The notes under the pieces: generated by a model
Databases searched by the model: none
The model's input: the letters and a program-made list of their open reading frames with translations, nothing else
Told to the model about the DNA's origin: nothing
IMG/VR virus record: IMGVR_UViG_3300046003_007892
Location: 124,001 to 188,000 of that record
DNA length: 64,000 bases
Reading direction: 5' to 3' (one strand)
Shown: positions 5,863 through 39,230 of the stretch, piece after piece
Position numbering within the stretch: the stretch's first letter is position 1
Layout of the letters: each line of letters starts with the position of its first letter
Program-made: the position numbers and the translations under genes

Positions 5863-7731
5863 ATGACAACGACCAAAGAGTGGAAAAAGCTCAGCCCATA
5901 TCAACAAGCCCGCCAACGGACAGAGATGTGGCTAGGCTCACGCGACCCCCATACGCAATCCATTCTCGAATATACCGAGGATGGACCGGTCTCGGTTTCG
6001 ACGACCTGGGTCCCGGCCCTGTTCACCGCGTTCCGCGAACTCTTCGACAACGCTCTCGACGAAGTCGTCTCGCACGGCAACGGTGACCGCATCGACGTCA
6101 GCTATGATGAGACCAGCAAGGTGTTCAGCATCCGAGACAACGGACGCGGTGTCCCCATCGAATGGGACGAGACCGAACAGAAATATGCCGCCACCGTCCT
6201 CCTATCTGAGCAGAACGCGGGACGGAACTTCGAGGATGACCGTGGTGCGACTCGCGGTCTGAATGGCGTCGGCGGCGCCGTGGTCAATTTCACCTCGGAA
6301 TATTTCCTCGCACACATCATTCGTGGCGGTCAGTCCTTCACCCAGAGGTTCGTCGAAGGTTTGGAGCACGTCGCCGAAGACCCCGTCATCCTTCCGGCCA
6401 AGAAATCCGACGTCAACGGGACCCGCATCGAGTTCAAGCTCTCGAAGAAAGTCTTCAAGGACATGCGCCTGCCCGAATCGTTCATTCGTTCGCGAATGTT
6501 CGAGGCCGCCCTCTGCTACCCGAATCTCAAGATTTTCTACAACGGCAAGCAGGTGAAAACGCGCGGCGTCGAGAAAGACCTGTTCCCGAAAAGGAAGCCC
6601 ATCACGGTCGAGATCGACGAGCCCGGTTTCCGCTCACGCTTCTGGTTGGTCCCGCAGTTCTTTGCCGATGGAACCGAGACCTCCCACAGTCTCGTCAACG
6701 CCATCCCGATGTTCAATGGCGGCGTGCACATCGACACCTTCAAGCGGATGTTCTTCTCCGGGCTCATCAACGCGCTGGCCAAGGAATCGAAAAAGCGCAA
6801 GCTGACGCCGAACCGCTCCGACCTCGCGGACGGAATGCTGATCTACAACATCACCGAGATGGATGCCCCGCATTTCGACAGCCAGTCGAAGACCCGAGTC
6901 ATCAACGAAGGGGTGAACAAGATCGTCACCGCCGCGCTCGACAACCCGGATTTCTTCAAGAACGTCATCCGCAAAAATGGTGAATGGATTGAGGACGTCT
7001 ACAAGCGGTGCGCCGAGCGGACCCTGAAGAAAGAATCGTCGGAAATCTCCAAGCTGGCCAAGAAGGGCGGCAAGGTCCGCGTGGCCAAACTCAAGGACGC
7101 CACCCACTCCGACCGCCAGCAGTGCAGCCTCTACATCACCGAGGGCGATTCGGCCGTTGGTGGTCTCGTCGATGCCCGCGACGCCCGCATCCATGCCGCC
7201 ATGCCCCTGAAGGGGAAGGTGATGAATGTGCACGGCATGTCGCCCAAGCAGATTTACGAGAACGAAGAACTGGCCAGGATGATGAACGCCATCGGGCTCG
7301 TGCCCGGCCAGCGCGTGAACCGCCATCTGCTCCGCTATGGCCGCGTCTACATCACCTGCGACGCCGACGAGGACGGTAAGTCGATCACCGGCCTGCTGAC
7401 CAACTTCTTCTACCTGAACTGGCCGGAGCTTTTCGAGGCCGACCGCCCGTTCATCCACGTCTTCGACACCCCGCTCATCATTGCGGCGAAAGGCAAAGAG
7501 CGGAAGTATTGGTACGCCGACAATGAGCACACGTTCAAGCAGGAAGATTTCAAGGGCTGGGAGATCACCCGTGCCAAGGGTCTGGCCCAGTTGAAGAAAC
7601 CGGACTGGCAGTTCGCGCTCAATAATCCGAAGTCCATCCCGCTCACCGATGACGGCGACCTCAATGCCGCCTTGTCACTGATCTTTGACCCCAAAAAAGC
7701 CGACGCCCGCAAAGAGTGGATTGGCATCTAA
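5863..7731 (+). CDS. DNA topoisomerase II large (ATPase+TOPRIM) subunit, T4 gp39/60-like
   Basis: FRELFDNALDE, DNGRGVP, GLNGVG, EGDSA, PLKGK, DADEDG. Confidence 0.97.
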   Translation: MTTTKEWKKLSPYQQARQRTEMWLGSRDPHTQSILEYTEDGPVSVSTTWVPALFTAFRELFDNALDEVVSHGNGDRIDVSYDETSKVFSIRDNGRGVPIEWDETEQKYAATVLLSEQNAGRNFEDDRGATRGLNGVGGAVVNFTSEYFLAHIIRGGQSFTQRFVEGLEHVAEDPVILPAKKSDVNGTRIEFKLSKKVFKDMRLPESFIRSRMFEAALCYPNLKIFYNGKQVKTRGVEKDLFPKRKPITVEIDEPGFRSRFWLVPQFFADGTETSHSLVNAIPMFNGGVHIDTFKRMFFSGLINALAKESKKRKLTPNRSDLADGMLIYNITEMDAPHFDSQSKTRVINEGVNKIVTAALDNPDFFKNVIRKNGEWIEDVYKRCAERTLKKESSEISKLAKKGGKVRVAKLKDATHSDRQQCSLYITEGDSAVGGLVDARDARIHAAMPLKGKVMNVHGMSPKQIYENEELARMMNAIGLVPGQRVNRHLLRYGRVYITCDADEDGKSITGLLTNFFYLNWPELFEADRPFIHVFDTPLIIAAKGKERKYWYADNEHTFKQEDFKGWEITRAKGLAQLKKPDWQFALNNPKSIPLTDDGDLNAALSLIFDPKKADARKEWIGI

Positions 7732-7734
7732 GAC

Positions 7735-9078
7735 ATGAAAACTTCAGAATATATTCTCAAGACCAACCGCGAATATTCCCTCTACGTCTGCTCGCAGCGG
7801 GCCATCCCCAATATCGAAGACGGGCTCAAACCCTCTCAGCGGATGCCGTTGTGGCTGCTGCGGAACAAGGCCGGGAAGATCAAGGTCTCGGCTCTCTCGG
7901 GCATGCTGGCGGCCGAGAAAATCTACAATCACGGTGAGATGTCGGCCAACAACGCCATCTCCCTCCTGGCGGCGCCGTTCAAGAACAACAACTGCCTCAT
8001 CGAAGGCGTCGGTATGTTCGGCAGCCGCGTGGTTCCCGATGGCATCGGGGCCCCTCGTTATGTCGAGGTCGCCCGTGCCGCCATCTCAGAGAAGGTTCTC
8101 TACCGGGACCTCGATCTCGTTCCCCAGACGGAGAACTACGACGCTTCGACCATGCAGCCCATCCACATGCTGCCCATCATCCCTCTGGTGCTCCTCAACG
8201 GCATTGAGGGCATCGCGGTCGGTTGGTCCACCTCCATCCTGCCCAGGTCTCTGAAGGCCATCGTAGACGCCAGCATCGCCGCCCTTGAAGGCAAGAAGAT
8301 CAAGACCCTGGTGCCCCACTACGGCCGGTATGACGTCAGCGTCGCGCCTCTGGCCGTCAACCAGTGGGAAATCCGTGGCAAGGTCAAGATCGAAGACACC
8401 TCGACGATTCGCGTCACCGAGCTTCCTCCGGGCCTGCACGTCGAGAACTTCCTCAAGCGTCTCGACGAGATGGAAGACCGCGATCAGATCACCGGCTTCA
8501 CCGACAACTCATCCGAGGCCATCGACATCGTCGTCCGTTTCAAGCGCGGCACCCTGAAAGCATGGGACGAGGAGTCGGCCATCGACTTCCTCAAGCTGAA
8601 GGAGAAAGTCACCGAGCGCATCACCGTCGTCGATTTCGGCGGGCAGTCCATCCGCACCTATGAGAATGCCGAAGAGGTCGTCAAGGCTTTCGTCCAGTGG
8701 CGTCTGGGTTGGTATTCAAAGCGGTTCGACAAGATGCTCGCCGACGCCGTCTATGAGGTCAACTACTGGCGAGTCCTCAAGGCCCTGTTCGATGACGGCT
8801 TCACCAAACGACTCGGCACGTTCGCCGACAGGTCAGCCGTTGAAGCCGACGTCGAAAAGGTCTCGAAGAAGGTTAAGCTCAACCTGGACGCCAAGCAGTT
8901 GGACCGTGTCGTCAACCTCCCGACCTACCGGTGGACGAAGGCGTTCGAGGCCGACGTGGATGCCAAGATCATCGACATCGACGGGGCCATCTCCGACTAT
9001 CAGGCCATTCTGTCATCGCCGGACCTCCTCAAGTCCGTCTACGCGGGGGAACTCGACGAACTGCGGAAGAAAATCTGA
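7735..9078 (+). CDS. DNA topoisomerase II breakage-reunion subunit, T4 gp52-like
   Basis: RAIPNIEDGLKPSQR, YNHGEMS, GAPRY (catalytic Tyr), LLNGIEGIAVGWST; no CTD. Confidence 0.97.
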   Translation: MKTSEYILKTNREYSLYVCSQRAIPNIEDGLKPSQRMPLWLLRNKAGKIKVSALSGMLAAEKIYNHGEMSANNAISLLAAPFKNNNCLIEGVGMFGSRVVPDGIGAPRYVEVARAAISEKVLYRDLDLVPQTENYDASTMQPIHMLPIIPLVLLNGIEGIAVGWSTSILPRSLKAIVDASIAALEGKKIKTLVPHYGRYDVSVAPLAVNQWEIRGKVKIEDTSTIRVTELPPGLHVENFLKRLDEMEDRDQITGFTDNSSEAIDIVVRFKRGTLKAWDEESAIDFLKLKEKVTERITVVDFGGQSIRTYENAEEVVKAFVQWRLGWYSKRFDKMLADAVYEVNYWRVLKALFDDGFTKRLGTFADRSAVEADVEKVSKKVKLNLDAKQLDRVVNLPTYRWTKAFEADVDAKIIDIDGAISDYQAILSSPDLLKSVYAGELDELRKKI

Positions 9079-9256
9079 TGGTGGTGTTCGTCGTCGGAAC
9101 CGCGCTGTTCCTGTCTGTCATCATCGGCGTTCTCGCGGCCAAATGAATACGGTGTGACCGGGTCCTGCGGGGTCCGGTCATCGGTCGTGTCCTACCAGCT
9201 AACATTTTTTGGGTAGGGTATTGCGGCTCAATCGGCTTCACCGTATAGGTTCGGAA

Positions 9257-9529
9257 ATGATAGTAGATTTCGTACCCCCAACAAAAAAATATCGTTTTGG
9301 AACAGCGAGTAAGAGTGCGCGGCTCACCGACAGCATCGTGATTGCGATTCGTCAGGCTGACCCGAGAATTTCGTGCAAAACCCTTGGCGAACGCTACGGA
9401 TGTTCGCACGTTTCGGTATGGAAGGCCCGCACAGGCGCGTCCTGGAAGCACGTCCCCATGTACGCCCCCGTGATCGATCATTCGCTGGACGGTGAAACCG
9501 GTTACCTCGAACTCCAAACCGGGACTTGA
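9257..9529 (+). CDS. Stand-alone HTH resembling the DNA-binding tail of HNH homing endonucleases
   Basis: ARLTDSIVIAIR...TLGERYGCSHVSVWKARTGASWKHV. Confidence 0.6.
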   Translation: MIVDFVPPTKKYRFGTASKSARLTDSIVIAIRQADPRISCKTLGERYGCSHVSVWKARTGASWKHVPMYAPVIDHSLDGETGYLELQTGT

Positions 9530-9560
9530 AGGAGTCGGAAATGCCATCTATCGTGGCACC

Positions 9561-9782
9561 ATGACCATCAAGAACATCACCCACTGCTATCCGCCCGGTT
9601 TCGAGGACGGAGACGACGATGCGAAGACCTACGACGTCATCCAGTACGCAGACGGCACGGTGGTCATCCACAGCGAGTCCACCAGCCAGACCCTGACCGC
9701 CAAGGAAGGTGTTCCGCAGGAATTCCGTTCGGCGGTGACGCTCGGCAAGAAGCTGGCGAAACAGGCTATAGGGTGGCGATGA
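9561..9782 (+). CDS. Hypothetical protein
   Basis: 73-aa ORF with phage-like codon usage. Confidence 0.55.
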   Translation: MTIKNITHCYPPGFEDGDDDAKTYDVIQYADGTVVIHSESTSQTLTAKEGVPQEFRSAVTLGKKLAKQAIGWR

Positions 9783-10155
9783 TCTCGGCCTGAGGACAAC
9801 CGCGCTTCACGGCGGCCGGAGTGGCGGGGAGTTCGCCGATCAGGATGACTTTGATCGTCAGGTTCTTGCAGTCGATGACGTGCGAATCACACATGAACCC
9901 GTCCGAGTAGATTACGAGTTCGCCCTGGCCGCAGTCGTGCTTGTCCGCCCAATCGACGACCGGCTGGAACAGGGTTCCCCCACCAGAACGCAGACGCTGG
10001 CTCCGAAGCGAGCCCACGCAGGTCTCGGACATAACCTCCGTTGTGAATGTGCAGACGAAATCGAGGGGATGGCCGCGCTTCTCGATATCGGAGACCACCG
10101 CTTCCAGCGTCTCCGCCGTGATTCCACCCGACACGTCGATGGCGAACAGTCTCAT
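9766..10155 (-). CDS. Stand-alone vWA-like (MIDAS) protein
   Basis: AIDVSGGI, GGGTLF, VIYSDG. Confidence 0.75.
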   Translation of the reverse strand: MRLFAIDVSGGITAETLEAVVSDIEKRGHPLDFVCTFTTEVMSETCVGSLRSQRLRSGGGTLFQPVVDWADKHDCGQGELVIYSDGFMCDSHVIDCKNLTIKVILIGELPATPAAVKRGCPQAEIIATL

Positions 10156-10589
10156 GCGCGGGTTTCCTTGCGGGCTGCTTTCTGGCGAGCCAGGGACCGC
10201 TGGCGGTCACGTACCTTCTTGCGGATAATGTTCATGGTCGTGACGTCCATGAGTTCGACGGAGAACTCGTCGGCGGGGCCGTTGTATTCGGCCATCAGGG
10301 CGCCGACCAGACGCTCTGCCGGAGTGGCGAGCGGGAACACGCGTTCGCGGACGATGCAGGACGTGTCGTGCGCGAGTTTGAACTTGGCCGCGTCGATCTC
10401 GGACAGCCAGATGGGCCGCTCGTAGACGTCGGCGAGGGTATGGGAGTTCGAGCGGAACACGTAGAGGACCGTCGAATGATTGTGGGCGAACTTCCACGTC
10501 GGGCAGTTGTCGTCCAGCCATGCGATCACGGTCGGCCACACCGACGAGTGCAGACGGACGTTCAGGAACGCGGTGTTAGGGCGGCTCAC
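10152..10589 (-). CDS. Hypothetical protein (small-family member)
   Basis: GTGA overlap; VIAWLDDNCPTW...WLSEIDAAKFKLAH. Confidence 0.7.
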   Translation of the reverse strand: MSRPNTAFLNVRLHSSVWPTVIAWLDDNCPTWKFAHNHSTVLYVFRSNSHTLADVYERPIWLSEIDAAKFKLAHDTSCIVRERVFPLATPAERLVGALMAEYNGPADEFSVELMDVTTMNIIRKKVRDRQRSLARQKAARKETRA

Positions 10590-10891
10590 AGGCTCGTCCT
10601 CAGGCCGGTCACGCGCTCGAAGACGGGGCGGAGTTGGTCGTTGAAGAGACCATCGACCTTCTCGACCTCGGTGACTTCGAGGTTGGTCGGCGAGTAGCGC
10701 GAGAACGTGATGTTGTAGAGATCGGCCCCGGTGAGTTCGATGGTCACGCGGTTGATGCGCTTGAGGGCGCGGCCGATCTGGAACTGAAGGCTGGTCGGCG
10801 TGGACTGAAGGTTCTTCGCGCCGGTCATGGCAGCGAAGCGGCTTCCGCCAAGCTGGTTCAGGATGGTGTGGGCGACGGTTTGATCGGACAT
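10586..10891 (-). CDS. Conserved phage hypothetical protein
   Basis: TILNQLGG..FAAMTGAKN...DLYNITF...QLRPVFERVTGLRTSL. Confidence 0.75.
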   Translation of the reverse strand: MSDQTVAHTILNQLGGSRFAAMTGAKNLQSTPTSLQFQIGRALKRINRVTIELTGADLYNITFSRYSPTNLEVTEVEKVDGLFNDQLRPVFERVTGLRTSL

Positions 10892-11253
10892 CAGATTGCC
10901 ACCACGCCGCAGGTGACTTCACCGAACATGGCCGGGGTGCCGTTCAGGGGCGGGAAGATTTTGCGGAACTGGCCGGGGAGGACGCGGTCGGGCTGGTCTT
11001 CGCCGCCGATGACGACGCGGTCCACCAGGATGCGGTAGCGTTGGCATCCTTCGAGACGGTCATTCCCGATGGCCTCCAGCACGCCTTCCACATAGGCGGC
11101 GCGCTCGCTGTCGGTTTCCATCCCGAGCACGACGTTGCCGGGAGTGATGAGCGGGAAGTCGAAGGACCGGACCCGCTGGCCGACCGTCAGGGTCTTGCCA
11201 TAGATGTCGGTCGTCGAGGTCAGGGTGGCGGGGTCAAACGTCGGGTTCGTCAT
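10891..11253 (-). CDS. Hypothetical protein
   Basis: GGAG SD; coupled stop/start. Confidence 0.65.
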   Translation of the reverse strand: MTNPTFDPATLTSTTDIYGKTLTVGQRVRSFDFPLITPGNVVLGMETDSERAAYVEGVLEAIGNDRLEGCQRYRILVDRVVIGGEDQPDRVLPGQFRKIFPPLNGTPAMFGEVTCGVVAI

Positions 11254-11312
11254 GGCGATCTCCTCAAACTTGACTCGTTTTCGCATGCCGCGAAAATCTT
11301 GTCAAGTAAATA

Positions 11313-11453
11313 TCAGTGACCCTTGCGCGGACCCTTCGGCGGCTGGTTCATGCGGTGGAAGTTCTTGACCGGCTTGCCCGGAAGGGCACCGGCCTCGAAA
11401 CGGCTCCAGCGGCCATAGTTGTCCGAGAACCTGATGTTGAAGATCATGTTCAT
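11313..11453 (-). CDS. Small hypothetical protein (46 aa)
   Basis: ATGA overlap with upstream stop; MNMIFNIRFSDNYGRW. Confidence 0.45.
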   Translation of the reverse strand: MNMIFNIRFSDNYGRWSRFEAGALPGKPVKNFHRMNQPPKGPRKGH

Positions 11454-11740
11454 GTGTAGGCCTCCAGCATGTCGGCGGCGCGGCGAATGGCGCGCTCATA
11501 GTCGAGATCGGCGGACGGGTCGGCGGGCAGGTGCTTGCGCAGATCGGCCACGAGTTCATCCCGCTCGGTGACGCGGAGTTCGGCCAGGAGCTTCTTGAAG
11601 TCCTTGATGGCCGCGTCGCGGTCGGGCGTCAGCACGTGCAGGGCCTGCAAGTTGGCGATGTGACCCTCGGTCTGCTTGATCATGTGTTCGGTCGGGGCGC
11701 CGCTGGCGACGAGTACCCGCATCCCTTTGGCGAAATCCAT
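11450..11740 (-). CDS. Hypothetical protein
   Basis: TGATG coupling, GGGAGG SD. Confidence 0.65.
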   Translation of the reverse strand: MDFAKGMRVLVASGAPTEHMIKQTEGHIANLQALHVLTPDRDAAIKDFKKLLAELRVTERDELVADLRKHLPADPSADLDYERAIRRAADMLEAYT

Positions 11741-12036
11741 CACGCCCTCCCTGCCATAACGTTGTCGTAGTGTTCCTGGCCGTAGGCCCTGATGTAGGAG
11801 GCCTTGATGATCTCGGCCTTCCGGTTCTTCAAGACGGTGGCGCACATATCGAGCGAGTCGCCCGCCGAGATTTGCTCGAAGCCTTCGCGCCAGACGATCT
11901 TGGTGTGGCCGAACTTCACCACGGAGCCGCGCCCGTATTCGTCCACGACGATGGCGGCGGTCTTGGGGTCACGGCAGGAGGCGACATAGACGCCGTCCGG
12001 GCCGAACACTTTCCAGTCGTGGGATTCGCGAGCCAT
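11740..12036 (-). CDS. Hypothetical protein
   Basis: AAGGAG SD; upstream TTGACA-N16-TAGGTG. Confidence 0.7.
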   Translation of the reverse strand: MARESHDWKVFGPDGVYVASCRDPKTAAIVVDEYGRGSVVKFGHTKIVWREGFEQISAGDSLDMCATVLKNRKAEIIKASYIRAYGQEHYDNVMAGRA

Positions 12037-12098
12037 CAGTTTCTCCTTCACGACCATCACCTAGCATGGTTCGGCAAGGTGTCAATGTTTATTTGACA

Positions 12099-12130
12099 AA
12101 AAAGGGCCCCCACGCTTGCGAGGACCCCTC
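12099..12130 (-). terminator. Intrinsic terminator
   Basis: GC-rich hairpin followed by T6 on minus strand. Confidence 0.65.
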
Positions 12131-12139
12131 CGACCAGAT

Positions 12140-12235
12140 TTAGCGATGCTTCACGAGATACTGAGCGGTTCCTCTCGGGTGTTTCCGAGCGTCTCGCCAC
12201 GCGTTGTCACCGGTCTTTCTTTTTTGCCCAACCAC
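12140..12235 (-). other. Short transcription unit: 31-aa basic peptide or structured sRNA
   Basis: TTGACA at 12258-12263 and terminator at 12099-12130 bracket GTG..TAA encoding VVGQKRKTGDNAWRDARKHPRGTAQYLVKHR. Confidence 0.35.
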
Positions 12236-12402
12236 TCTGGATGCTGCCCCATTTCCTGTCAAGTAAATATTTCACTTTTCTGAAAAAGTATTTTGACCTC
12301 AAGGGGTTAACTATGGCTAAATAGGTTCACACGGGAATTCACCCGTGGTGGGCAGGAAGACCTCTCAAGACGGAGAGGCAGCTAAGACCCACAAGGAGAA
12401 AT

Positions 12403-13053
12403 ATGACTGCTACCCCACAAGGGCGGCGCGTAAATGCGCATGCCATAAAATCCCCCACAATCGAAACCCCCACCATCATCGAGTTTATCCTCGACGAGAC
12501 CGGCTCCATGGGTGTCTGCAAAGATGCTGTCGTGGCCGGGTTCAACGACTACATAGAAGAACAGCGAAGTGTGCCGGGCCTGTGCCAGATCACACTGACC
12601 AAGTTCGAGGGCGGCAAGCTCGTCACGCCGTATCAAGACCTCGACATCGGGCTCGTGCCCCTCATGACTGACCGGATGTTCAATCCTGGTGGCATGACCA
12701 ACCTCTACGATGCCATCGGCGAGCGGATAGCTTCCGTTCAAGAGCGCACTCGGGATTGGTCTGTGACGCCAAACGTCCTGATCGTCGTCATGACTGACGG
12801 TGCCGACAACCAGAGCCGGGACTATTCACACAAGGCCATCAAATCGGTCCTGTGGTCCCACCAGCGTCTGGGCTGGACGTGCGTCTATCTGGGCGCACAG
12901 GAAGGAGCGATGAAGATCGCCTCCGGCCTCGGCTTCAAAGAAGGCAACATCAAATGCTTCAAGCAAGCACAGATGAAAGAGACCATGCGTGATCTCTCTG
13001 CCGCCACCACGGTCTACCGCACTCAACCTGCTACCGCAGCAGCGTTCTTCTAA
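12403..13053 (+). CDS. vWA domain protein
   Basis: FILDETGSM, GGMTNLYDAIG, VMTDGADNQS; AAGGAG SD. Confidence 0.92.
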   Translation: MTATPQGRRVNAHAIKSPTIETPTIIEFILDETGSMGVCKDAVVAGFNDYIEEQRSVPGLCQITLTKFEGGKLVTPYQDLDIGLVPLMTDRMFNPGGMTNLYDAIGERIASVQERTRDWSVTPNVLIVVMTDGADNQSRDYSHKAIKSVLWSHQRLGWTCVYLGAQEGAMKIASGLGFKEGNIKCFKQAQMKETMRDLSAATTVYRTQPATAAAFF

Positions 13054-13063
13054 GGATAACGAA

Positions 13064-13954
13064 ATGAAAACCAACGAATTTGAAATCCGGCTCCTGATCA
13101 AGGGCCGCCCGGTCGTCGAATACCCCCACAACGGACGCACCTTCATTGAAGGTCGCGAAGGTAGTGAGTTCGAGATCGAGTTCATCAATCACCGCGCTGA
13201 GCGAGTCGAAGCCCTCATCTCCGTCGATGGCCTTTCGGTCACGGACGGCAAGACCGCTGGCATCGAGTCCACCGGCTATCTCGTCGAGCCAAACGGTCGC
13301 ATCACCATTCCGGGCTGGAAGCTCAACAACGAAGCCGTGGCGAAGTTCTTCTTCTCCGGCAAGAACAAATCCTACTCCACCCAGACGACCGGGTCGTCGG
13401 CCAACAACGGCGTCATCGGCGCCATGGTCTTCAGGGAGCGTTACGTTCTGCCCGTGCATGTGGCTCCTCCGGGCGTCTATCACCAGTACCTGCGCGGTGG
13501 CGTTTGGGGCGGGTCGGCAGGAGACGTCAACACCACGCTGATCGGCATGAACGGTGGTTCTGGTCTCGACGCGGATACCCTGGATGGCTTCGGAGTGGCG
13601 TCGTTCACCTCCGCAATGGCCTGTTCTGCTCCTCTTGAGCGGTCGCGGGCGGCTGCTCCCCCGAGCGGGGCTCGTCGCAAGGGTATCGCCACAACCCTTC
13701 AGAACACTCGGCCGGAAACCGTGACCTTGAACCAACTCGGCACTGGCTTCGGTCGCGCTGAGGAGTTCGCCACCACGGTGGTGTCGTTCGAACGCGGTGA
13801 TCTGGCTGCCCAGATCGTCGTCTACTACGACAACGCTCAAGGCCTGAAGGCTCGGGGCATCCAGGTCGGTCGTCCGTCGCGGCTCAAGTATGCTGTGGAG
13901 CCTCAGGCATTCCCTGGCATGGGCTGCACGCCGCCGAAAGACTGGCGGGCGTAA
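13064..13954 (+). CDS. Conserved hypothetical protein (beta-rich N-domain), vWA neighbour
   Basis: ISVDGLSV..G...GYLV....IPGW...F.F...SY...GVIGAMVFRE; strong codon bias. Confidence 0.8.
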   Translation: MKTNEFEIRLLIKGRPVVEYPHNGRTFIEGREGSEFEIEFINHRAERVEALISVDGLSVTDGKTAGIESTGYLVEPNGRITIPGWKLNNEAVAKFFFSGKNKSYSTQTTGSSANNGVIGAMVFRERYVLPVHVAPPGVYHQYLRGGVWGGSAGDVNTTLIGMNGGSGLDADTLDGFGVASFTSAMACSAPLERSRAAAPPSGARRKGIATTLQNTRPETVTLNQLGTGFGRAEEFATTVVSFERGDLAAQIVVYYDNAQGLKARGIQVGRPSRLKYAVEPQAFPGMGCTPPKDWRA

Positions 13955-13960
13955 TAAATA

Positions 13961-13993
13961 AGGGGGAGGGGTTTCGGCCCCTCCTTTCTTTTT
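13961..13993 (+). terminator. Intrinsic terminator
   Basis: GGAGGGG-tttcgg-CCCCTCC then T-rich run. Confidence 0.85.
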
Positions 13994-13996
13994 ATG

Positions 13997-14025
13997 TTGA
14001 CACCCTGAGTGGTATCGCCTACATT
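13997..14025 (+). promoter_or_regulatory. Sigma70-type promoter
   Basis: TTGACA-N17-TACATT. Confidence 0.75.
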
Positions 14026-14066
14026 CAAATCTCAACCCCGGCTCGGGTTCGCCCCGGCCACCTTTC

Positions 14067-14199
14067 GGAGACTACCGTCGTGACCATGTAGATTGCTACT
14101 AACGACATTCTGACCGACCACCAGATCGACTCCCCGTGCCTCCCGCACGGTACGGAGCCGGTCTTTTTTTGTGCCCGGAGTTCGCTCCAATGGAAATGA
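14067..14199 (+). promoter_or_regulatory. Attenuator-like leader: amber-interrupted uORF, terminator and SD-sequestering hairpin
   Basis: GGAG-N9-GTG ACC ATG TAG; readthrough frame stays open to TGA 14197-14199 overlapping ATG 14196; hairpin 14134-14150 and T7 at 14164-14170; GGAG-TTCG-CTCC at 14177-14188. Confidence 0.55.
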
Positions 14200-14525
14200 A
14201 GGATGACTTCTATGACGACAATCTAGATCGCACCTACAACGAATCGGACCTGGAGATACACGCTCTCCTGTTCGATGATGATGATGACTACGAGTGGGAA
14301 GACAGGCCCGCCATAGCCACTATCCGACAGCAGTATCCGGGCTGGTACTTGATGAAGATCATCAACTACTCGGCTCCCAAGCTCGCTGAAATCGAGAAGT
14401 GGCTCGAAGACAATACGAGGGGGCGTTGGGCCCGCATCGGTTGGTCTTCAGGCTGTGCCTACACGGTCGGTCTCGCTTTCGAGAACGACTACGACACCCT
14501 CCTCTACAAGCTGCAATGGCAGTGA
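14190..14525 (+). CDS. Hypothetical protein (small-family member)
   Basis: IEKWLEDNTRGRW...AFENDYDTLLYKLQW; start 14190 or 14196. Confidence 0.75.
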   Translation: MEMKDDFYDDNLDRTYNESDLEIHALLFDDDDDYEWEDRPAIATIRQQYPGWYLMKIINYSAPKLAEIEKWLEDNTRGRWARIGWSSGCAYTVGLAFENDYDTLLYKLQWQ

Positions 14526-14551
14526 AACTCATCTCATCAAAGGAAAACACC

Positions 14552-15124
14552 ATGTCTGCTCTGAACCTCAAGCCCACTTTCACCGACCGCGAATCCTACA
14601 AGGCCTGGATTGCCTCGTGGCGGGCCGCCTACCGCGAAATGTCCCAGGACATCCGCACGCGGAAATACAAGCTCAAGGACGCCCAGCGGGCCGAAGAGAG
14701 CAACGCCGGAACCCTTCAGGCCCAGCTTCGTCAGCACCGCCACATGGCGGCCAAGATGATGATGCTCCGTGAGGAGGCCACGCAGCGTCGTGACCGAATC
14801 CTGGGCATGCACAAAGCCCTGAAGGAACAGTTCGACTCGTTCCCGCTCGACCTCGGCACCTGCAAGAACGTCGATTTCCACTTCAACAAGGGTCACATCG
14901 AATTCCCCTTCCTGCCCATGTGGGCTCTGAAGGTGAAGGGCCAGACCTTCTACGTCCACAACATCGAGTCCGAGGCTCCGTGGAATACCCACGAGCGTTC
15001 CTCGGGTTCGACCAAGGGCGTGCTCCGCTTCAAGAAATGCAACATCGTGATCGATCAGTCCGGCACTGCTCGCATCACGGAGGCCGTCGATTTTTTCGTT
15101 GACGAAATGGCGGAGGCAGCATAG
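14552..15124 (+). CDS. Hypothetical protein
   Basis: AAAGGA SD; FHFNK...PMWALKVKGQTFYV...TKG; ends TAG GAG TAA. Confidence 0.8.
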   Translation: MSALNLKPTFTDRESYKAWIASWRAAYREMSQDIRTRKYKLKDAQRAEESNAGTLQAQLRQHRHMAAKMMMLREEATQRRDRILGMHKALKEQFDSFPLDLGTCKNVDFHFNKGHIEFPFLPMWALKVKGQTFYVHNIESEAPWNTHERSSGSTKGVLRFKKCNIVIDQSGTARITEAVDFFVDEMAEAA

Positions 15125-15417
15125 GAGTAAAGGACTGAGAGTGTCTTGGAGGCCGAGACCGCATTCTGGAACTAAGCGACTTCCCGCAAGGGACGCTCCA
15201 GATGCCCGAACGCTAGCCAAGTAGTCCTCCAAGCGGAGGCAAGAAGTGGGCGCACATCCTGCCGCACTCTCTAGACCCGGCGACGGGTCGAGGTAGAAGC
15301 TCTGAAGCACAAGGAAATCCTCTCGGGGATAGTGTGCCCTCGGAATTGGCGGCTCTTAGCGGGGTCGTCATGTAGCCGGGGAGGTATGGAGGTGAAAATC
15401 CCCCTGAGCATCTATTA
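15125..15417 (+). ncRNA. Unidentified ~290-nt structured RNA with predicted pseudoknot
   Basis: GNRA hairpins (tccc-GCAA-ggga, gacccg-GCGA-cgggtc, ggt-GAAA-atc); crossing helices 15131-36/15223-28 and 15137-44/15264-71; no plausible ORF. Confidence 0.7.
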
Positions 15418-15418
15418 C

Positions 15419-15487
15419 GCGCCCGAAAGGCCTATCCTGGGCTTCTAACCCCCAAGGGTGAGGTTTCGATTACCTCCGGGCGCACCA
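15419..15487 (+). tRNA. D-armless tRNA-like element; anticodon CUA by register (UCU alternative)
   Basis: Acceptor GCGCCCG/CGGGCGC+A+CCA; T arm GAGGT-TTCGATT-ACCTC; anticodon stem TGGG/CCCA; only 12 nt replace the D arm. Confidence 0.7.
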
Positions 15488-15494
15488 TTTTGAG

Positions 15495-15530
15495 GAAAGG
15501 CGGGGACCAGCGGGTCTCCGCCTTTCTTTC
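15495..15530 (+). terminator. Strong hairpin, probable terminator
   Basis: GAAAGGCGGGGACC-agcg-GGTCTCCGCCTTTC then TTTC. Confidence 0.75.
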
Positions 15531-15654
15531 ACAGGCTTCGGTGGCTTGGGAACCTGGGACCCAAGCGACTGTTGAGCCGCCATTGTCTTCGGAGGTGGCG
15601 GTGTGGGGGCGGTATGGATTTGGCGGCGCCGCTGGCCTGCCGTCCCCAACCAGC

Positions 15655-15730
15655 GCGTCGTTAGCTCAGATGGTAGAGCATCGGCTTCTAACACCGAGGG
15701 TCACGGGTTCGAGTCCCGTCCGACGCGCCA
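15655..15730 (+). tRNA. tRNA with CUA anticodon (amber suppressor candidate)
   Basis: 76 nt; D stem GCTC/GAGC; anticodon stem TCGG/CCGA with C31-A39 mismatch puts CTA at 34-36 (15688-15690); T arm ACGGG/CCCGT; G73, encoded CCA. Confidence 0.85.
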
Positions 15731-15783
15731 TTTCCTTTACAATAAATCTTGCCTTTGCTGCATTGCGATGGTATCCCTATTTT

Positions 15784-16371
15784 ATGCAAAATAGTAATGT
15801 CTCTTTGGTCCGAGCAGATGGCTCGCCCCGCATCCGCGTCAACCTGGACGTCGATGGCGTCATGTGTGATTTCGATGGCTGGTGCCGCACCAACTACGGT
15901 GGCGGCTCGCGCGAACTCTCGTTCGAAAACCCCGATGGCAGCATCCTGACTGGCGACGAAGCCCTGTGGGCCTATGTCGATCAGCACCCGGAGTTCTGGC
16001 TCGACATGCCGTTCTTCTACGGTGCCGACGAAATCATGGACATCTGCCGCCCCTACGGCGTCCGGTTCCTGACCGGCTGCCCGCGCGATGAGAATCGTTT
16101 CGCTCGCGCCTCGGCCGAAAAGGTCCAGAAACTGAACGGCAAGTTCCCCGGCATCGAAGTCGTCACGTGCTGGTCGAAGCACAAGATGCTCCACATGCAG
16201 GAGCCCGGCGACATCCTGGTCGATGATTTCATCGCCAACATTCGCCGCTGGGAAAAGGCGGGCGGCTGCGCGGTCTACTTCAAGACCCACAAGCAGGCCG
16301 TGTCCGATCTCCGTTCGGCTCTGGCTCGTCAGTTCCCCGACATCAAAGCGGGCGAGCGCGTCTGGGTGTGA
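15784..16371 (+). CDS. HAD-family 5'(3')-deoxyribonucleotidase-like
   Basis: NLDVDGVMCDF, FLTG, ILVDD...N...W..AGG. Confidence 0.88.
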   Translation: MQNSNVSLVRADGSPRIRVNLDVDGVMCDFDGWCRTNYGGGSRELSFENPDGSILTGDEALWAYVDQHPEFWLDMPFFYGADEIMDICRPYGVRFLTGCPRDENRFARASAEKVQKLNGKFPGIEVVTCWSKHKMLHMQEPGDILVDDFIANIRRWEKAGGCAVYFKTHKQAVSDLRSALARQFPDIKAGERVWV

Positions 16372-16757
16372 TGACCACGGTCCTCTATCCTCTGTCACCA
16401 CGCCAGAAGATCATGGCCTTGATCATTCACGCCCATGCGGCTGTACTGAATAAGAAAAGCCGGTCGTATCCCGACGCAGATTTCGGCGACATCGACTGGT
16501 TTTTCGAGGTCAAAGAGTTCGGCTACACGATGAACTTCAGACTATCGAGTCCTCACGAAATCATGACCCGTGACTGGAAGGTCTATATGGACCCTTCTCT
16601 TCAGGATATGAATTTCGTAGCCAACACCGATGACTTCGGATATTTCACCAAATCGTTCTGGCAACTCTACAGAGACGTCAACGCGGTCTTCGCCAAAGAG
16701 CCGACGCCCGACTGGTTGGTGCCTCGTCTGAAGAAAATAGGGGGCTGTCATCCCTAA
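16368..16757 (+). CDS. Hypothetical protein
   Basis: GTGA coupling; 129 aa. Confidence 0.65.
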   Translation: MMTTVLYPLSPRQKIMALIIHAHAAVLNKKSRSYPDADFGDIDWFFEVKEFGYTMNFRLSSPHEIMTRDWKVYMDPSLQDMNFVANTDDFGYFTKSFWQLYRDVNAVFAKEPTPDWLVPRLKKIGGCHP

Positions 16758-17013
16758 GGCGCGAAAGAAAAAATGTTTCCGGCGCCTCTACACGCCGGAC
16801 TCGACCGGACTCGAATTCCGTTTCGATTTCGTTCGTCCGCTGGGTTCTCGGGCGCGGGCAACGCACCCTCTACGGGATGACCAGTTGCAGGAAATGTGGG
16901 GGCATTGGAGCCGTGACAGCATCGAGCTAGATGACGAGCGGCAGATGATCTCGCTCTACTTTGAGGATGAACGTGATTTTGTCCTCGCCAGCCTGACAAT
17001 TCCCGCAGAATAA
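16750..17013 (+). CDS. Probable small-family protein lacking a canonical start codon
   Basis: Frame open 16741-17013 ending LYFEDERDFVLASLTIPAE; possible ATC start after GGGGG. Confidence 0.45.
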   Translation: MPKARKKKCFRRLYTPDSTGLEFRFDFVRPLGSRARATHPLRDDQLQEMWGHWSRDSIELDDERQMISLYFEDERDFVLASLTIPAE

Positions 17014-17055
17014 GCTTGCCAGGATGGCAACGGGCCTGTAAGGAAAGATTTCTAC

Positions 17056-17146
17056 GCGAGGGTGCCAGAGCATTCAAATGGGCCGGACTGCAAATCCGGT
17101 GGAGCCAATAACTCCTACGAAGGTGCGAATCCTTCCCCTCGCTCCA
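17056..17146 (+). tRNA. tRNA-Cys(GCA) with long variable arm (class II / Tyr-like scaffold)
   Basis: Acceptor GCGAGGG/CCCTCGC, U73, CCA; CCGGA-CTGCAAA-TCCGG; V-arm GGAG-ccaataa-CTCC; T arm GAAGG-TGCGAAT-CCTTC. Confidence 0.88.
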
Positions 17147-17164
17147 CCCTTTCTGGAGCCAGTC

Positions 17165-17641
17165 GTGAATGTCGTAGACGAACACGAATACGGCGACGAC
17201 GGCTACCTTCTCGAAATTCGCGACTGGTGGGGCGGAGAAAGCATCGGTGCCTTCGGTCATATCCCCATCAAGGAAGTCGCCACGCAGGCTCGGCGCGACG
17301 GTAGGTCGTTCGGCTCCCAGGTTCGCGACATCCGTGCATCGGAAGGCTACTACCTGAAATCCATCAACTACGGCGCCTACCATGAACTTCGAGTTGAGTT
17401 CGAAGGTCGGGCGGGTCGCCGGACCATAACCTTGGCTGAAATCTCGGACGCCGTCTACCGCACGTTTTTGGAGTTCAGCGTTTCGTTCGAGAAACCTTGG
17501 ACGTCGATGGTGGTCAGAGCCAGGAACAAACTCCCGGAAGGCTTCATCGTTGGTTTTCAGAGCGACGCCGACCTGACCAAATACATCATGATGCTGGACG
17601 CCGCGATTGCCAGCCTGAACAAACCCTTTATAGTCAAGTAG
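17165..17641 (+). CDS. Hypothetical protein (small-family motif at C-terminus)
   Basis: GGAG SD, GTG start; [16 protein letters not shown]. Confidence 0.7.
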
Positions 17642-17649
17642 GCCCCAAG

Positions 17650-19596
17650 ATGAGCAAGTATCGCACCCACACCTGTGGCAAAGTAGACAAATGGACCGCT
17701 GGCGTCCGGGTCAAGCTCTCCGGCTGGGTCCATTCGCGTCGCGATCACGGTGGCCTGTGCTTCATCGATCTCCGGGACAACTACGGCATCGTCCAACTCG
17801 TCGCCCACCCCGAGAGCCCCGCTTTCGCTATCCTCAACGATGTCCGCCTCGAAAGCGTGATCTGCGTCGAGGGACCGGTGATTATGCGGGCCAAGGAACA
17901 CGTCAACGCCAATCTGGCTTCCGGCGAGGTCGAGGTTCAGGTCATGGCCTGCGAAGTTCTCAGCGAAGCCGAACCCCTTCCGGTGCCGGTCGTGCCGCCG
18001 CGCAACAAGGAAGGTGAGGAAGTCCTCTACCCGGAAGAGCTTCGCCTCAAGCACCGCTATCTCGACCTCCGCCGTGACGCCCTGCACCGCAACATTCTCC
18101 TCCGCAGCGACGTCATCGCTCATATTCGCGAGGGCATGATCTATCAGGGATTCCGGGAGTTTCAGACCCCCATCCTGACCGCCTCTTCGCCCGAGGGGGC
18201 GCGGGACTTCCTGGTGCCCTCCAGGGTCCATCCGGGCCAGTATTACGCCCTCCCGCAGGCCCCGCAGCAGTTCAAGCAACTCCTCATGGTCGCGGGCTTC
18301 GACCGCTATTTCCAGATCGCTCCCTGTTTCCGCGACGAGTCCGCGCGTGCCGACCGCAGCCCTGGTGAGTTCTACCAACTCGACATCGAGATGTCGTTCG
18401 TCGAGCAGGACGAAGTCTTCGCTGTCGCCGAAAAGATTCTGTCGAGCACCTTCGAAAAGTTCGCCCCCAAAGGCATGACCGTCGATCAGGCGCCCTACGT
18501 CCGTATTCCCTACCGGGAATCCATTCAGCGTTTCGGCTCCGACAAGCCCGATCTCCGAAACCCTCTGGAGTTCCGTGACGTCACCGAAACTTTCCGGGAC
18601 GGTGACTTCCCGTTCTTCGCCGACATGATCGCCAAGGACCCCGAGGCCCGCGTCTGGGGCATCGTGGCTTACGACAAGCAGTATCTGCAAGGCCTGCACG
18701 ACCCTCTGCTCCCCGAAGGCTATCCACTGGTCACGTCGGGTTTCTGCAAGAAAATGGACCAGTGGGCCAAAGACGAGGGACGGGGTCTGGCTTATATCCG
18801 CTACGCCGACGACCCCTATGTCGATGGCGTGACCCCCTATGCCCATCGCCCGCATGGGCCGGTGGCGAACAAGATCGGCGAAGACGCGGCTGGCAAGATC
18901 GGCCAGGACTTCAACATCCTCGACGCCAACGAGTGTGCCATCTTCTTCGTCGCGGGGCGGCCGGATGAGATGTATAAGTTCGCCGGACTGGTGCGCACCA
19001 AGCTGGGAGAAGAACTCGACCTGATCGAGAAGAATGCCTTCAGGTTCTGTTGGGTGGTTGACTTTCCCATGTTCGAACTCAACGACGAAGGCCGGGTGGA
19101 TTTCTCCCACAACCCCTTCTCGATGCCACAGGGCGAGATGGACGCTCTGGAGAACCAGAACCCGCTCGACATTCTCGCCTATCAATACGACATCGTCTGC
19201 AACGGCATCGAACTCTGCTCGGGCGGCATTCGGAACCACAAGCCGGAGATCATGCTCAAGGCTTTCGAGATCGCCGGGTATGGGCCCGAGATTGTCGAGC
19301 AGCAGTTCGGCGGTATGCTCAATGCTTTCCGCTACGGGGCTCCCCCGCATGGCGGCATGGCGCCCGGTATCGACCGCATCGTCATGCTCCTGGCTGGTGA
19401 GGAGAGCATCCGCGACGTCATCGCCTTCCCGCTCAACCAGCAGGGCCAGGATTTGATGATGAACGCGCCCGCGCCGCCGACCGAGAAACAGGTTCGGGAA
19501 CTCGGCCTGAAGGTTCGTCTCAAGGATGGGCCGCACCTCATCGACGGCAAGACCGCAGACGTCAAGAACGGCGTCATCACGGTGGTGCAGGGGTAG
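17650..19596 (+). CDS. aspS: Aspartyl-tRNA synthetase, probably non-discriminating
   Basis: YRTHTCG, RRDHGG (His at the ND position), [35 protein letters not shown]. Confidence 0.98.
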
Positions 19597-19597
19597 C

Positions 19598-19912
19598 GTG
19601 AGGGGCATCGAACAACAGACGGTGTATGACAAGCCGCCGCCTGCGGTGGGTGTCCTCGCGGCTGCGCTGAACATCAGCATCCCGGAGGCCAAGGCGGCTC
19701 TTCGGGAGTTGATCTCCGCAGGCTACGTCATCGCCCCGCGTGAGCCTACAAACTCGATGCTGGTCGCCTACTTCGAATCCTACGGCAAAGTTGCCACCAA
19801 CCCGAATACGTTCGTGGTCGGTATTGGAAAAGCTCGGCGGCGATGGGCGGCGATGGGCAAAGCGGGAACAGCGGTCGCGCTCTCGACAAAGGCTATCCCA
19901 GATGAAACGTGA
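19598..19912 (+). CDS. Hypothetical protein
   Basis: GTG start 1 nt after the aspS stop. Confidence 0.6.
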   Translation: MRGIEQQTVYDKPPPAVGVLAAALNISIPEAKAALRELISAGYVIAPREPTNSMLVAYFESYGKVATNPNTFVVGIGKARRRWAAMGKAGTAVALSTKAIPDET

Positions 19913-20120
19913 TCTAGAAGCCATCGACGCCGCGACCGACGCTGCCGCAAAGGTGGTGTCGGCTCGCCTGCCGGAGATCATCCGCGAGCACATGGGCCGT
20001 GACATGACTTTCGCCGAGGTCATCCGTGCCGGTAATGCCGCTGTGCCCGACCCGGCCGCTGGGAGGTGCCGTGCGGCGATCTCGGTTGAACTCTATAAGG
20101 AAACGATGGCCCGCCTATGA
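19902..20120 (+). CDS. Hypothetical protein
   Basis: Overlap-coupled ORF. Confidence 0.55.
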   Translation: MKRDLEAIDAATDAAAKVVSARLPEIIREHMGRDMTFAEVIRAGNAAVPDPAAGRCRAAISVELYKETMARL

Positions 20121-20509: not shown

Positions 20510-20541
20510 TTACTTGACAAGTCATCGCGGCATGCTACTGT
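20510..20541 (+). promoter_or_regulatory. Early-type promoter ACTTGACAAG-class
   Basis: TTGACA-N16-TACTGT; first 20 nt identical to 62407-62426. Confidence 0.75.
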
Positions 20542-29218: not shown

Positions 29219-29284
29219 GGGTTCCTCCTCAGGAATTTCACAGGATGGTCACAGAATATCCGGTTTCCCAAATTTGGAAAGGTT

Positions 29285-29938
29285 TTTTTCGGACTACGAG
29301 ATGTCCGACTGTCGTCGTCCATCTGCTTCTGTTCGTCTCACTCGCAAGCTCGTTCGCTTGAACATCAGCAATTCAGACACTTAAACAAACAAGTCATCAT
29401 CCCTAGATCGCGAAGCATCACTTTTATCCCCCTATGATTCTGGAGGTCCCCATAGGGGCAGAATCATAGAAGGAAAAGTAATCAGACACCCTGAGTCGGC
29501 TCATGACCAGCCACATCAGCCGCGATGTCGTTTTACGGACGGCTGGCGGTTCCCCGCTACCAGCATGAGCGGCCCAATCCCGGCGAGCTTACTATGGTGA
29601 ACGAGACCTCAGCTTGTTCCTCTGGATATCGATCAGGTCGATTTAATCCCCAGGAGCCTATGTCTCAGCGTGCTATTTTTGTGCCGAACGGTTATGGAAT
29701 TGCTTCCAAGCTTACACGGAGGGCGATGGGCGGACCCCACGTGCACGGATAGACGTCAAGCGTTAGACGTAGCTATCCTCTTTGTTTAAGTGCCTTTTCG
29801 CGAATACGAACTCCGCCGAGGGGCTGACCGCTGGGAAGCAAATCACCTCACTGGTCGTCCTACCCTGTAGCCGGTCATTCTTCCCGACTTTCAGTGTTGA
29901 GGCGGGCATCACCTCTAGTAGCCCTGGACGCGCTATGT
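29285..29938 (-). ncRNA. Unidentified ~650-nt highly structured RNA
   Basis: Own promoter; no credible ORF; 12-bp long-range helix 29378-89/29781-92; 11-bp helix 29432-42/29459-69 extended by G-U only on the minus strand; GGAA and GCAA GNRA loops; G(CUUG)C loop with tandem GA pairs. Confidence 0.8.
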
Positions 29939-29945
29939 AGGGGTA

Positions 29946-29975
29946 ACTATAGAATCGAATCCTCGGAGTCGTCAA
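29946..29975 (-). promoter_or_regulatory. Sigma70-type promoter for the large ncRNA
   Basis: TTGACG-N18-TATAGT. Confidence 0.75.
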
Positions 29976-29993
29976 ATAGAATCAGAGGTTGTA

Positions 29994-32122: not shown

Positions 32123-32132
32123 CGGATAGAAG

Positions 32133-32160
32133 AAAGGCCCGGACTTGCGTCCGGGCCCCT
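32133..32160. terminator. Hairpin between convergent genes
   Basis: GGCCCGGA-cttgcg-TCCGGGCC. Confidence 0.7.
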
Positions 32161-32161
32161 C

Positions 32162-32707
32162 TCAAAATCCTCTCAATCTTACAAAAACGTGCTGACCATT
32201 CCTCCAGGAGTGGAGCGGGTTTCGGGCCCAAGATGGTCTGACGCTGACGTTATGGAAGTGGGTAGCCCCTCCGGTCGGGTCGCCTGACGTGGCGAGATCG
32301 GTCCCATAGAGGGTATCGTAGGCGAGTTGCTGGGAAGCCAGCCAAGCAGAGCGTTCGCGGGGAATGATTCCGCCAACCGGGCGGGTCGTCCACGTGAACT
32401 GTCCGTCATCCCATACGACGCCGCATACTGTTTGCGGAAAACGAGGGGATTCGGAACGGTTGAGAACTACGTGCGCTACGGCACGTCGGCCGTCGATGTC
32501 ACGGACACCTCGGGCTTCATGATAGATAGTCAGAGCGAGACAAAGAAACTCACGACGCTCGTTATCTTGCAGTTCCTGGGCTTGTTGGAACACGGGCACC
32601 TGACTACTCAGGGGTCCCATCTTCCATGCGTTCGCGAACGCGGTAGTAGACGTAAAGAGTGAAATGACTACTGCCGCAGCCGCGAGAGCGGCTTTGGATA
32701 TCTTCAA
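32162..32707 (-). CDS. Secreted SleB/Hydrolase_2-family cell wall hydrolase
   Basis: Signal peptide; CLALTIYHEARG, AVAHVVLNR, FPQTVCGVV, QFTWT, GGATHFH; late motif at 32736-32742. Confidence 0.92.
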   Translation of the reverse strand: MKISKAALAAAAVVISLFTSTTAFANAWKMGPLSSQVPVFQQAQELQDNERREFLCLALTIYHEARGVRDIDGRRAVAHVVLNRSESPRFPQTVCGVVWDDGQFTWTTRPVGGIIPRERSAWLASQQLAYDTLYGTDLATSGDPTGGATHFHNVSVRPSWARNPLHSWRNGQHVFVRLRGF

Positions 32708-32797
32708 AATAGCGGTCCTTTTGCTGTTGAAGGGTTATTTAGGCATTTTGGTTGCCCAAATGTCAAAATCAGCGTGGCGCGCATTGTCGCAGCCAGT

Positions 32798-32923
32798 TCA
32801 CTGGCGGTGTTTCTGCCATGCGGAGATGCCCCACAGGGTGCCGACGAGGGCGCCGATCACGTAGCCGAGACCGAATGCGGGCATGGAAATGTTGGCGAGT
32901 TGGTCTGCTGTCAGGCCGTACAT
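32798..32923 (-). CDS. Small single-TM protein
   Basis: GGAG SD; FGLGYVIGALVGTLWGISAW. Confidence 0.5.
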   Translation of the reverse strand: MYGLTADQLANISMPAFGLGYVIGALVGTLWGISAWQKHRQ

Positions 32924-39223: not shown

Positions 39224-39226
39224 ATA
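39220..39226 (+). promoter_or_regulatory. Late promoter, leaderless configuration
   Basis: CTAAATA-TGGC-ATG; the TAA is the upstream stop. Confidence 0.7.
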
Positions 39227-39230
39227 TGGC

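Follow-up and report, generated by a model that had tools for sequence, protein, structure and literature searches.

A UAG-terminated mini-ORF upstream of a conserved jumbo-phage gene and its possible gating by amber readthrough

Why should a phage that uses the standard genetic code carry a tRNA with a CUA anticodon, and why should a very short reading frame ending in UAG lie between a promoter and a gene in the vicinity of that tRNA? These questions are raised by a locus in a 64,000-nucleotide stretch of a 240-kb IMG/VR contig (record IMGVR_UViG_3300046003_007892, positions 124,001 to 188,000; hereafter the window, or W; all coordinates are those of the window). The contig is from a jumbo phage related to Sinorhizobium phage Phosso and Agrobacterium phage Atu_ph07, and encodes topoisomerase II subunits, an AspRS and tRNAs. 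An initial sequence-only reading had proposed that expression of the operon downstream of a leader at 13997-14199 depends on amber readthrough, and that the leader could form a positive-feedback switch. We first asked whether the elements are present as described. They are, and in order along the plus strand the locus comprises the following.

13962..13994 (+), intrinsic terminator of the upstream gene, which ends at 13954; an 11-bp stem followed by CTTTTTATGT (-18.1 kcal/mol), which insulates the leader from upstream transcription.
13997..14025 (+), sigma-70-type promoter: TTGACA (13997-14002), a 17-nt spacer and TACATT (14020-14025), 10 of 12 matches, with the transcription start predicted near 14032.
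14040..14059 (+), 5' stem-loop of the leader transcript, specific to this phage.
14067..14070 (+), GGAG, the Shine-Dalgarno (SD) site of the mini-ORF, 9 nt before the GTG.
14080..14091 (+), mini-ORF GTG ACC ATG TAG; the proposed gating amber codon is at 14089-14091 and is followed by A.
14092..14199 (+), readthrough frame of 35 sense codons, crossing the terminator and the gene A SD and ending at TGA 14197-14199.
14123..14170 (+), intrinsic terminator (attenuator): a bulged hairpin at 14123-14164 plus U7 (T7 at 14164-14170 in the DNA).
14177..14188 (+), GGAG-UUCG-CUCC, with the GGAG (SD of gene A) inside a weak 4-bp UUCG hairpin.
14190..14525 (+), gene A, encoding a 111-aa phage-only protein of unknown function.
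14552..15124 (+), gene B (190 aa).
15419..15487 (+), tRNA-like element without a D arm, with a UUCUAAC (CUA) anticodon loop and an encoded ACCA, followed by a hairpin at 15499-15522 plus a TTTCTTTC tail.
15655..15730 (+), tRNA with a CUA anticodon, the candidate amber suppressor.

The promoter is the best sigma-70 match in 9000-20000. Moreover, TTGACA-N16-18-TANNNT occurs six times in the window against 0.38 expected, and every copy lies directly upstream of a gene. The other five promoters have leaders of 7-42 nt whereas this one has 165 nt, so the leader is unusual for this phage. The terminator hairpin folds at -22.8 kcal/mol (z -3.3), and none of 200 shuffles is as stable. No other hairpin followed by a T-run was found on the plus strand between 14170 and 15419. 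Three details of the sequence-only reading required correction. Homologues of the product of gene A begin MELK or MEYN, so the gene starts at ATG 14190 and not at 14196, and the TGA lies 7 nt inside gene A, still at coupling distance, rather than overlapping its start codon. The terminator stem is longer than the 14134-14170 first assigned. Finally, the hairpin that was thought to hide the SD site of gene A is no better than shuffles (-5.6 kcal/mol, z -0.6), and stable sequestration of that SD is therefore not supported in the window.

The tRNA at 15655-15730 was called by ARAGORN and matched the Rfam tRNA family (57.7 bits). The tRNA-like element at 15419 was called by neither, but could be aligned to a homologous element in one of the related loci described below (L012). 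We then asked whether TAG might simply be a sense codon in this phage, through local or constitutive recoding, in which case the upstream frame would be a normal N-terminal extension of gene A or a normal overlapping gene. None of the long, clearly coding ORFs of the window contains an in-frame TAG, and 18 of 96 genes in a rough gene call end in TAG. Whole-genome TAG recoding is thus rejected and the phage uses the standard code. Conversely, because TAG ends about 19% of the genes, efficient suppression would extend many proteins, and suppression may therefore be weak.

In the window alone, the open frame behind the TAG is unremarkable: the probability of an open frame is about 0.4 in shuffles. 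The fold of the whole leader is not exceptional either (z -1.0) and, since much sequence had been scanned, a look-elsewhere effect applies. On this evidence the mini-ORF and the open frame could be accidents, and the hairpin with its U7 just a leaky terminator or the end of a small RNA. To distinguish chance from function we turned to relatives. A DNA search of GenBank phages with 12900-16400 matched little beyond the tRNA (one 124-nt, 71% hit to Phosso inside gene B). The only close relative of the leader (L004) is 100% identical and thus uninformative, and a word-based protein search gave only that relative. An exhaustive HMMER search with gene A, however, found 70 homologue clusters, none with a named function. 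We collected the loci with upstream DNA (designated L001 and so on), in part with a locus scan based on a 10-sequence alignment, and removed duplicates (L003-5 are the window itself, L007 equals L009, L016/17 equal L015, L019/20 equal L018 and L026 equals L025). L013, with only 27 nt upstream, was not included. This left 16 distinct leaders with at least about 70 nt of upstream DNA (GC 40-62%), mostly unalignable between lineages.

Fourteen of the 16 leaders share one layout: the window, L012, L014, L018, L021, L022, L024, L025, L011, L009, L015, and Phosso L001, L010 and L023 (GC 0.42 to 0.62). Each has a -35/-10 promoter and a mini-ORF of two to eight codons, and although the length and codons of the mini-ORF differ, its stop is TAG in 14 of 14. 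Behind the TAG, the frame stays open until -5, +1, +1, +7 or +8 nt from the gene A ATG in five leaders, and continues in frame into gene A in nine. Thus, the frame relation is not conserved but arrival at the start codon is. Between the TAG and the gene, this frame has 0 stops in 458 codons, whereas the other two frames have 12 and 17 stops in 454 and 445 codons (29 in 899); the expected number is 14.8 (P about 4e-7), and the product of the per-leader shuffle probabilities is 10^-7.6. These figures treat the leaders as independent, which they are not entirely: L001, L010 and L023 are alignable, and W, L012 and L014 share a 12-nt motif. Removing two of the three Phosso-type leaders, however, changes the exponent by less than one. 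The base after the TAG is A, C or G, and never T, in all 14 leaders.

Within the Phosso group, a 12-nt insertion and a 1-nt indel occur without creating a stop. The 1-nt indel, between Phosso and L010/L023, switches the frame from being fused to gene A to ending at a TGA that overlaps the ATG. As a control, we scanned all loci, on both strands, for a promoter followed by a leaderless ATG and an ORF of at most 9 codons. The scan found 11 cases ending in TAG, ten of which are the gene A leaders, with 21-153 open codons behind the stop; it found 9 cases ending in TGA or TAA, mostly with 1-14 open codons behind (two outliers, 44 and 50). Chance is, in view of these results, close to refuted, and we consider it very unlikely. 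A scan of the window for other TAG-gated leaders gave only false positives (12313 lies inside the -10 region of a promoter, and 43788 inside another gene). An ATG TAG at 15370, with 143 open codons through the tRNA genes, is not conserved in L012, L018, L024 or L025 and was set aside as probable chance.

The relatives also bear on the recoding alternative. In its favour, the frame is continuous with gene A in 9 of 14 leaders, and gene callers sometimes annotated part of it (P0011, P0008 and P0016). In the other five, however, the frame is out of phase with gene A and stops at its start. Moreover, the readthrough peptides are not conserved, gene A keeps its own SD and ATG everywhere, and the frame contains terminator hairpins. 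Together with the ordinary use of TAG as a stop elsewhere in the phage, this makes it very unlikely that the leader frame is a normally decoded coding sequence.

In 13 of the 14 leaders, the ATG of the mini-ORF lies 4-7 nt (mostly 6) after the -10 hexamer, so that the transcript would begin at or next to the AUG, the arrangement of leaderless mRNAs. The window is the exception, and supplies a 5' hairpin and a GGAG instead. Its GTG ACC ATG TAG nevertheless matches the ATG ACC ATG ACG TAG of L021, and it shares the motif TAGATTGCTA(A)C with L012 and L014. The motif ATGTCGTAGATYGCTAAY had no exact match in IMG/VR.

Importantly, every one of the 14 leaders has a stable hairpin between the TAG and gene A, and the readthrough frame runs through it. 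In nine (W, L012, L014, L018, L021, L022, L011, L024 and L025, the last with two in tandem), the hairpin is followed by a U-run, as in an intrinsic terminator; z is -2.9 to -7.0 for the seven folded as isolated hairpins, whereas L024 and L025 were folded only as longer stretches. In the other five (L001, L010, L023, L009 and L015), the 5' arm of the hairpin pairs with the SD site of gene A (z -2.2 to -3.9); with L002 included, the range is -2.2 to -4.0. Between Phosso and L023, the changes of GUGC/GCAC to GUGU/ACAC and of GUU/AAC to GUG/CAC are compensatory. Structure is conserved while sequence is not, as function predicts.

These hairpins are significant on their own, and it remains possible that the leader regulates gene A through its terminator or SD hairpin in response to some other signal (a protein, a small RNA, temperature or RNase processing). 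The mini-ORF would then always terminate at UAG, and would act as a ribosome-loading or peptidyl-tRNA drop-off minigene or protect the 5' end. Mini-ORFs of two and three codons do seem to resemble the lambda bar minigenes (2-4 codons in 9 leaders), and PTH2 peptidyl-tRNA hydrolase genes lie nearby in Phosso, L012, L015 and L017. This view, however, explains neither why the stop is always TAG, nor why the frame behind it stays open up to the gene start across unalignable leaders and across indels, nor the linkage to CUA tRNAs, and we regard it as unlikely. Less likely still is a T-box-like sensor, in which the UAG of the leader RNA would pair directly with the CUA anticodon, without translation, to control the terminator. 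The codon and anticodon are complementary and a terminator lies downstream, but Rfam finds no T-box or any other family in the leader, at the gathering threshold or at E<=1. Furthermore, the UAG lies 6-24 nt from the predicted 5' end with no Stem-I-like structure, and the model does not explain the in-frame ATG at the transcription start, the open frame, or the SD-hairpin class that has no terminator.

We next examined the association with suppressor tRNAs. Gene B lies downstream of gene A in every locus with enough downstream DNA (tblastn hits in 15 loci). A CUA-anticodon tRNA follows gene B, directly or after a further tRNA-like element, on the same strand in five lineages (W, L012, L018, L024 and L025). 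In contrast, L013 has a CUA-type tRNA on the other strand, and in Phosso the tRNA lies 3.7 kb upstream. The related isolate AP-J-162 is also reported to carry a CUA "tRNA-Pyl" (PMC11242549). The two leaders that lack the element are informative. L008 has no leader at all, as the upstream gene overlaps gene A. Atu_ph07 lacks the TAG mini-ORF, and has a published opal (UCA) suppressor and no amber suppressor (PMC6102473). In this phage, the gene A SD is buried in a strong hairpin (z -4.0); the upstream gene ends ATG AAG TGA, and six codons later a TAG sits inside the anti-SD arm. Opal readthrough there would carry a ribosome into the hairpin. This is a single case (no further Atu_ph07-like locus was found) and only hints that the gate codon tracks the type of suppressor.

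Taken as a whole, the anatomy, its conservation and the gene order lead us to propose that the leader turns on gene A, and what follows it, only when UAG is decoded as sense. In this model, a ribosome initiates on the mini-ORF, at the GTG preceded by GGAG in the window or at a 5'-terminal AUG in relatives, and meets the UAG after 2-8 codons. If release factor 1 (RF1) wins, the ribosome leaves and the downstream hairpin forms, so that transcription stops at about 14170 in the window, and at the U-run in the eight other leaders of this type, or the SD site of gene A is occluded in the remaining five. If a CUA-anticodon tRNA wins, in the window the phage's own at 15655-15730, the ribosome translates on through the 5' arm of the hairpin, which prevents termination or frees the SD. 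It then stops on top of the gene A start codon or runs in frame into gene A, which couples translation of gene A to readthrough. Translation of the mini-ORF, readthrough by the phage tRNA, antitermination and coupling are all inferred from sequence, as are the promoters and transcription starts. With this reservation, we consider it likely that readthrough-dependent gating is the conserved function, in line with the sequence-only reading. We are less sure of the antitermination step in the window, which we judge only slightly more probable than not. The kinetics are uncertain: a ribosome would have to load and pass the UAG within the 30-110 nt before RNA polymerase reaches the U-run, and we identified no pause site and, in the MFE and centroid folds, no antiterminator hairpin.

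Where the tRNA-CUA lies downstream of the attenuator in the same transcription unit, in the window and four other lineages, basal readthrough would make more tRNA and hence more readthrough, and the circuit would be a positive-feedback loop. The gene order in these five lineages supports this idea, but it is not general, because in Phosso-type phages the logic would be feed-forward only. It also seems possible, if unlikely, that the device reads RF1 activity, which might fall through host stress, host shut-off or a phage anti-RF1 factor, rather than the amount of suppressor tRNA. Readthrough depends on the ratio of tRNA to RF1, so that the sequence cannot distinguish the two, and in Phosso the tRNA is not under the control of the leader. 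Against this stand the tight linkage of the module to tRNA-CUA genes in six lineages and the absence of the TAG mini-ORF from the amber-less Atu_ph07; in addition, no RF1-targeting gene was identified.

The proposed device may be compared with several known systems. In the E. coli pyrBI leader, a promoter-proximal ORF also appears to run through the intrinsic terminator, and a ribosome closely following RNA polymerase probably prevents the hairpin from forming without an elaborate antiterminator structure; pyrBI, however, appears to sense UTP through polymerase pausing, whereas here the decision point would be an in-frame UAG at codon 3-9, and the leader ORF ends on, or fuses to, the start of the next gene. 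The trp/his/leu-type attenuators likewise place a short ORF with regulatory codons upstream of a terminator, with the position of the ribosome deciding termination, but they sense charged sense-codon tRNAs by stalling and use alternative 2:3 and 3:4 hairpins, while here the regulatory codon is a stop codon and no alternative antiterminator hairpin is evident in the MFE or centroid folds. In prfB and tnaC, expression is set by how efficiently an early in-frame stop codon is recognised by a release factor. prfB uses UGA and a +1 frameshift and senses RF2, and tnaC uses RF2 inhibition and Rho; here UAG would set RF1 against a suppressor tRNA, with no frameshift. Melting by an upstream ribosome of a hairpin that hides the next SD is probably also the principle of MS2-type coupling and of the erm/cat leaders; five relatives, and Atu_ph07, have such hairpins, but entry of the ribosome would here require readthrough of a UAG, and in the window the terminator dominates.

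An engineered transcriptional switch, in which a TAG is placed in a leader peptide to control downstream transcription (reviewed in PMC6412442), follows the same logic, but is synthetic and built on the tna and trp leaders with orthogonal tRNA and synthetase pairs. In TAG-recoded (code 15) phages, suppressor tRNAs have been proposed to gate late or lytic genes (e.g., PMC9523058, PMC10879173), and there too a phage-encoded CUA tRNA would make expression of particular genes conditional on amber decoding. Those phages, however, carry many in-frame TAGs inside coding genes, whereas here the code is standard and a single TAG sits in a non-coding leader mini-ORF acting on a terminator or an SD hairpin. 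In full-text literature searches we found no description of a natural leader gated by amber suppression; what appears new is the sensed input.

The product of gene A offered no clue to the purpose of the gating. It has no Pfam, PHROG or NCBIfam match, its confident AF2 model (pLDDT 84) has no PDB fold match with E<0.7, the Atlas gives only phage hypothetical proteins, and no relatives were found in bacterial genomes. Gene B is likewise unassigned.

Many phages that use the standard genetic code carry suppressor tRNAs for reasons that are not known, and the published descriptions of this group simply list them as a "suppressor" or as "tRNA-Pyl" (PMC6102473, PMC11242549). A conserved cis-element whose only sensible input is amber readthrough gives these tRNAs a concrete and testable job, that of a trans-acting regulator or timer of a specific gene module, and cultured isolates exist (Sinorhizobium phages Phosso and AP-J-162). 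We think it more likely than not that a lineage of standard-code jumbo phages uses a UAG-terminated, mostly leaderless mini-ORF as a gate in front of gene A, gene B and often the suppressor tRNA itself, which would give phage suppressor tRNAs a regulatory rather than a decoding role. Such a switch would add a new input, release factor against suppressor tRNA, to the classical repertoire of leader-ORF attenuation and translational coupling, and would be the natural counterpart of switches that synthetic biologists built by hand. It also names a phage-only protein family, gene A, together with the linked gene B, as likely partners of the suppression system.

Five further promoters of the TTGACA-N16-18-TANNNT type were found in the window, at 20514, 24182, 62411 and 63107 (+) and at 1650 (−). 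Four of them share TTGACAAGT, and all have very short leaders; they probably represent the early promoter class of the phage. Our gene call found no convincing ORF in three long stretches, 29219-29993, 32123-32806 and 39224-39709 (775, 684 and 486 nt, respectively). The 32123-32806 stretch continues the frame of the preceding gene through TAG, TGA and TGA, but its translation does not look protein-like. The gene call also missed a small ORF at 43694-43507 (−), with a lipoprotein-like signal peptide (MKAAFAILATLFVLGC...).

We also noted the following tRNAs and tRNA-like elements in the window and in L012, one of the related loci:
Window 15419-15487, tRNA-like element without a D arm, followed by a hairpin at 15499-15522.
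L012 2891-2956, element homologous to the one at window 15419-15487.
L012 2968-3044, tRNA (Rfam, 51 bits).
Window 17056-17146, tRNA-Cys (GCA).

The D-armless element has a 7-bp acceptor stem, a T arm, a UUCUAAC (CUA) anticodon loop and an encoded ACCA, but it is not called by ARAGORN or Rfam in the window. A homologous element precedes the second tRNA in L012, and thus the pair formed by a D-armless CUA element and a tRNA is conserved. The tRNA at L012 2968-3044 appears to have an anticodon loop of six bases (CUCUAC), and ARAGORN reports a two-base anticodon for it. The tRNA-Cys, at 91 nt, is unusually long for a tRNA-Cys.

A second ATG TAG, at window 15370-15375, is preceded by GTCGTC (compare GTCGTGACCATGTAG in the leader). 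The frame behind it stays open for 143 codons, to 15805, through both tRNA elements and a terminator-like hairpin, into the 5'-nucleotidase-like gene. This arrangement is not conserved in the related loci L012, L018, L024 or L025, so it is probably due to chance. In Atu_ph07 (locus L002, 4867-4949), the relative that carries an opal suppressor, the SD of gene A is in a strong hairpin (z −4.0). The upstream gene ends ATG AAG TGA, with a TAG six codons later inside the anti-SD arm. Possibly, this is an opal-gated version of the same device, although it is a single case.

Genes for PTH2-family peptidyl-tRNA hydrolases lie a few genes downstream of gene A in several relatives:
L001 (Phosso) 5865-6197.
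L012, from 4650.
L015 2626-2961.
L017 2040-2498.

Aminoacyl-tRNA synthetase genes also cluster there (Cys and Ser in Phosso, and Asp in the window, at 17650-19596). Finally, gene B (window 14552-15124, with homologues in 15 loci; about 175-217 aa, no family match) is always linked to gene A. In five lineages, gene B is followed, directly or after a further tRNA-like element, by the tRNA-CUA, and it is a candidate functional partner of the suppressor.
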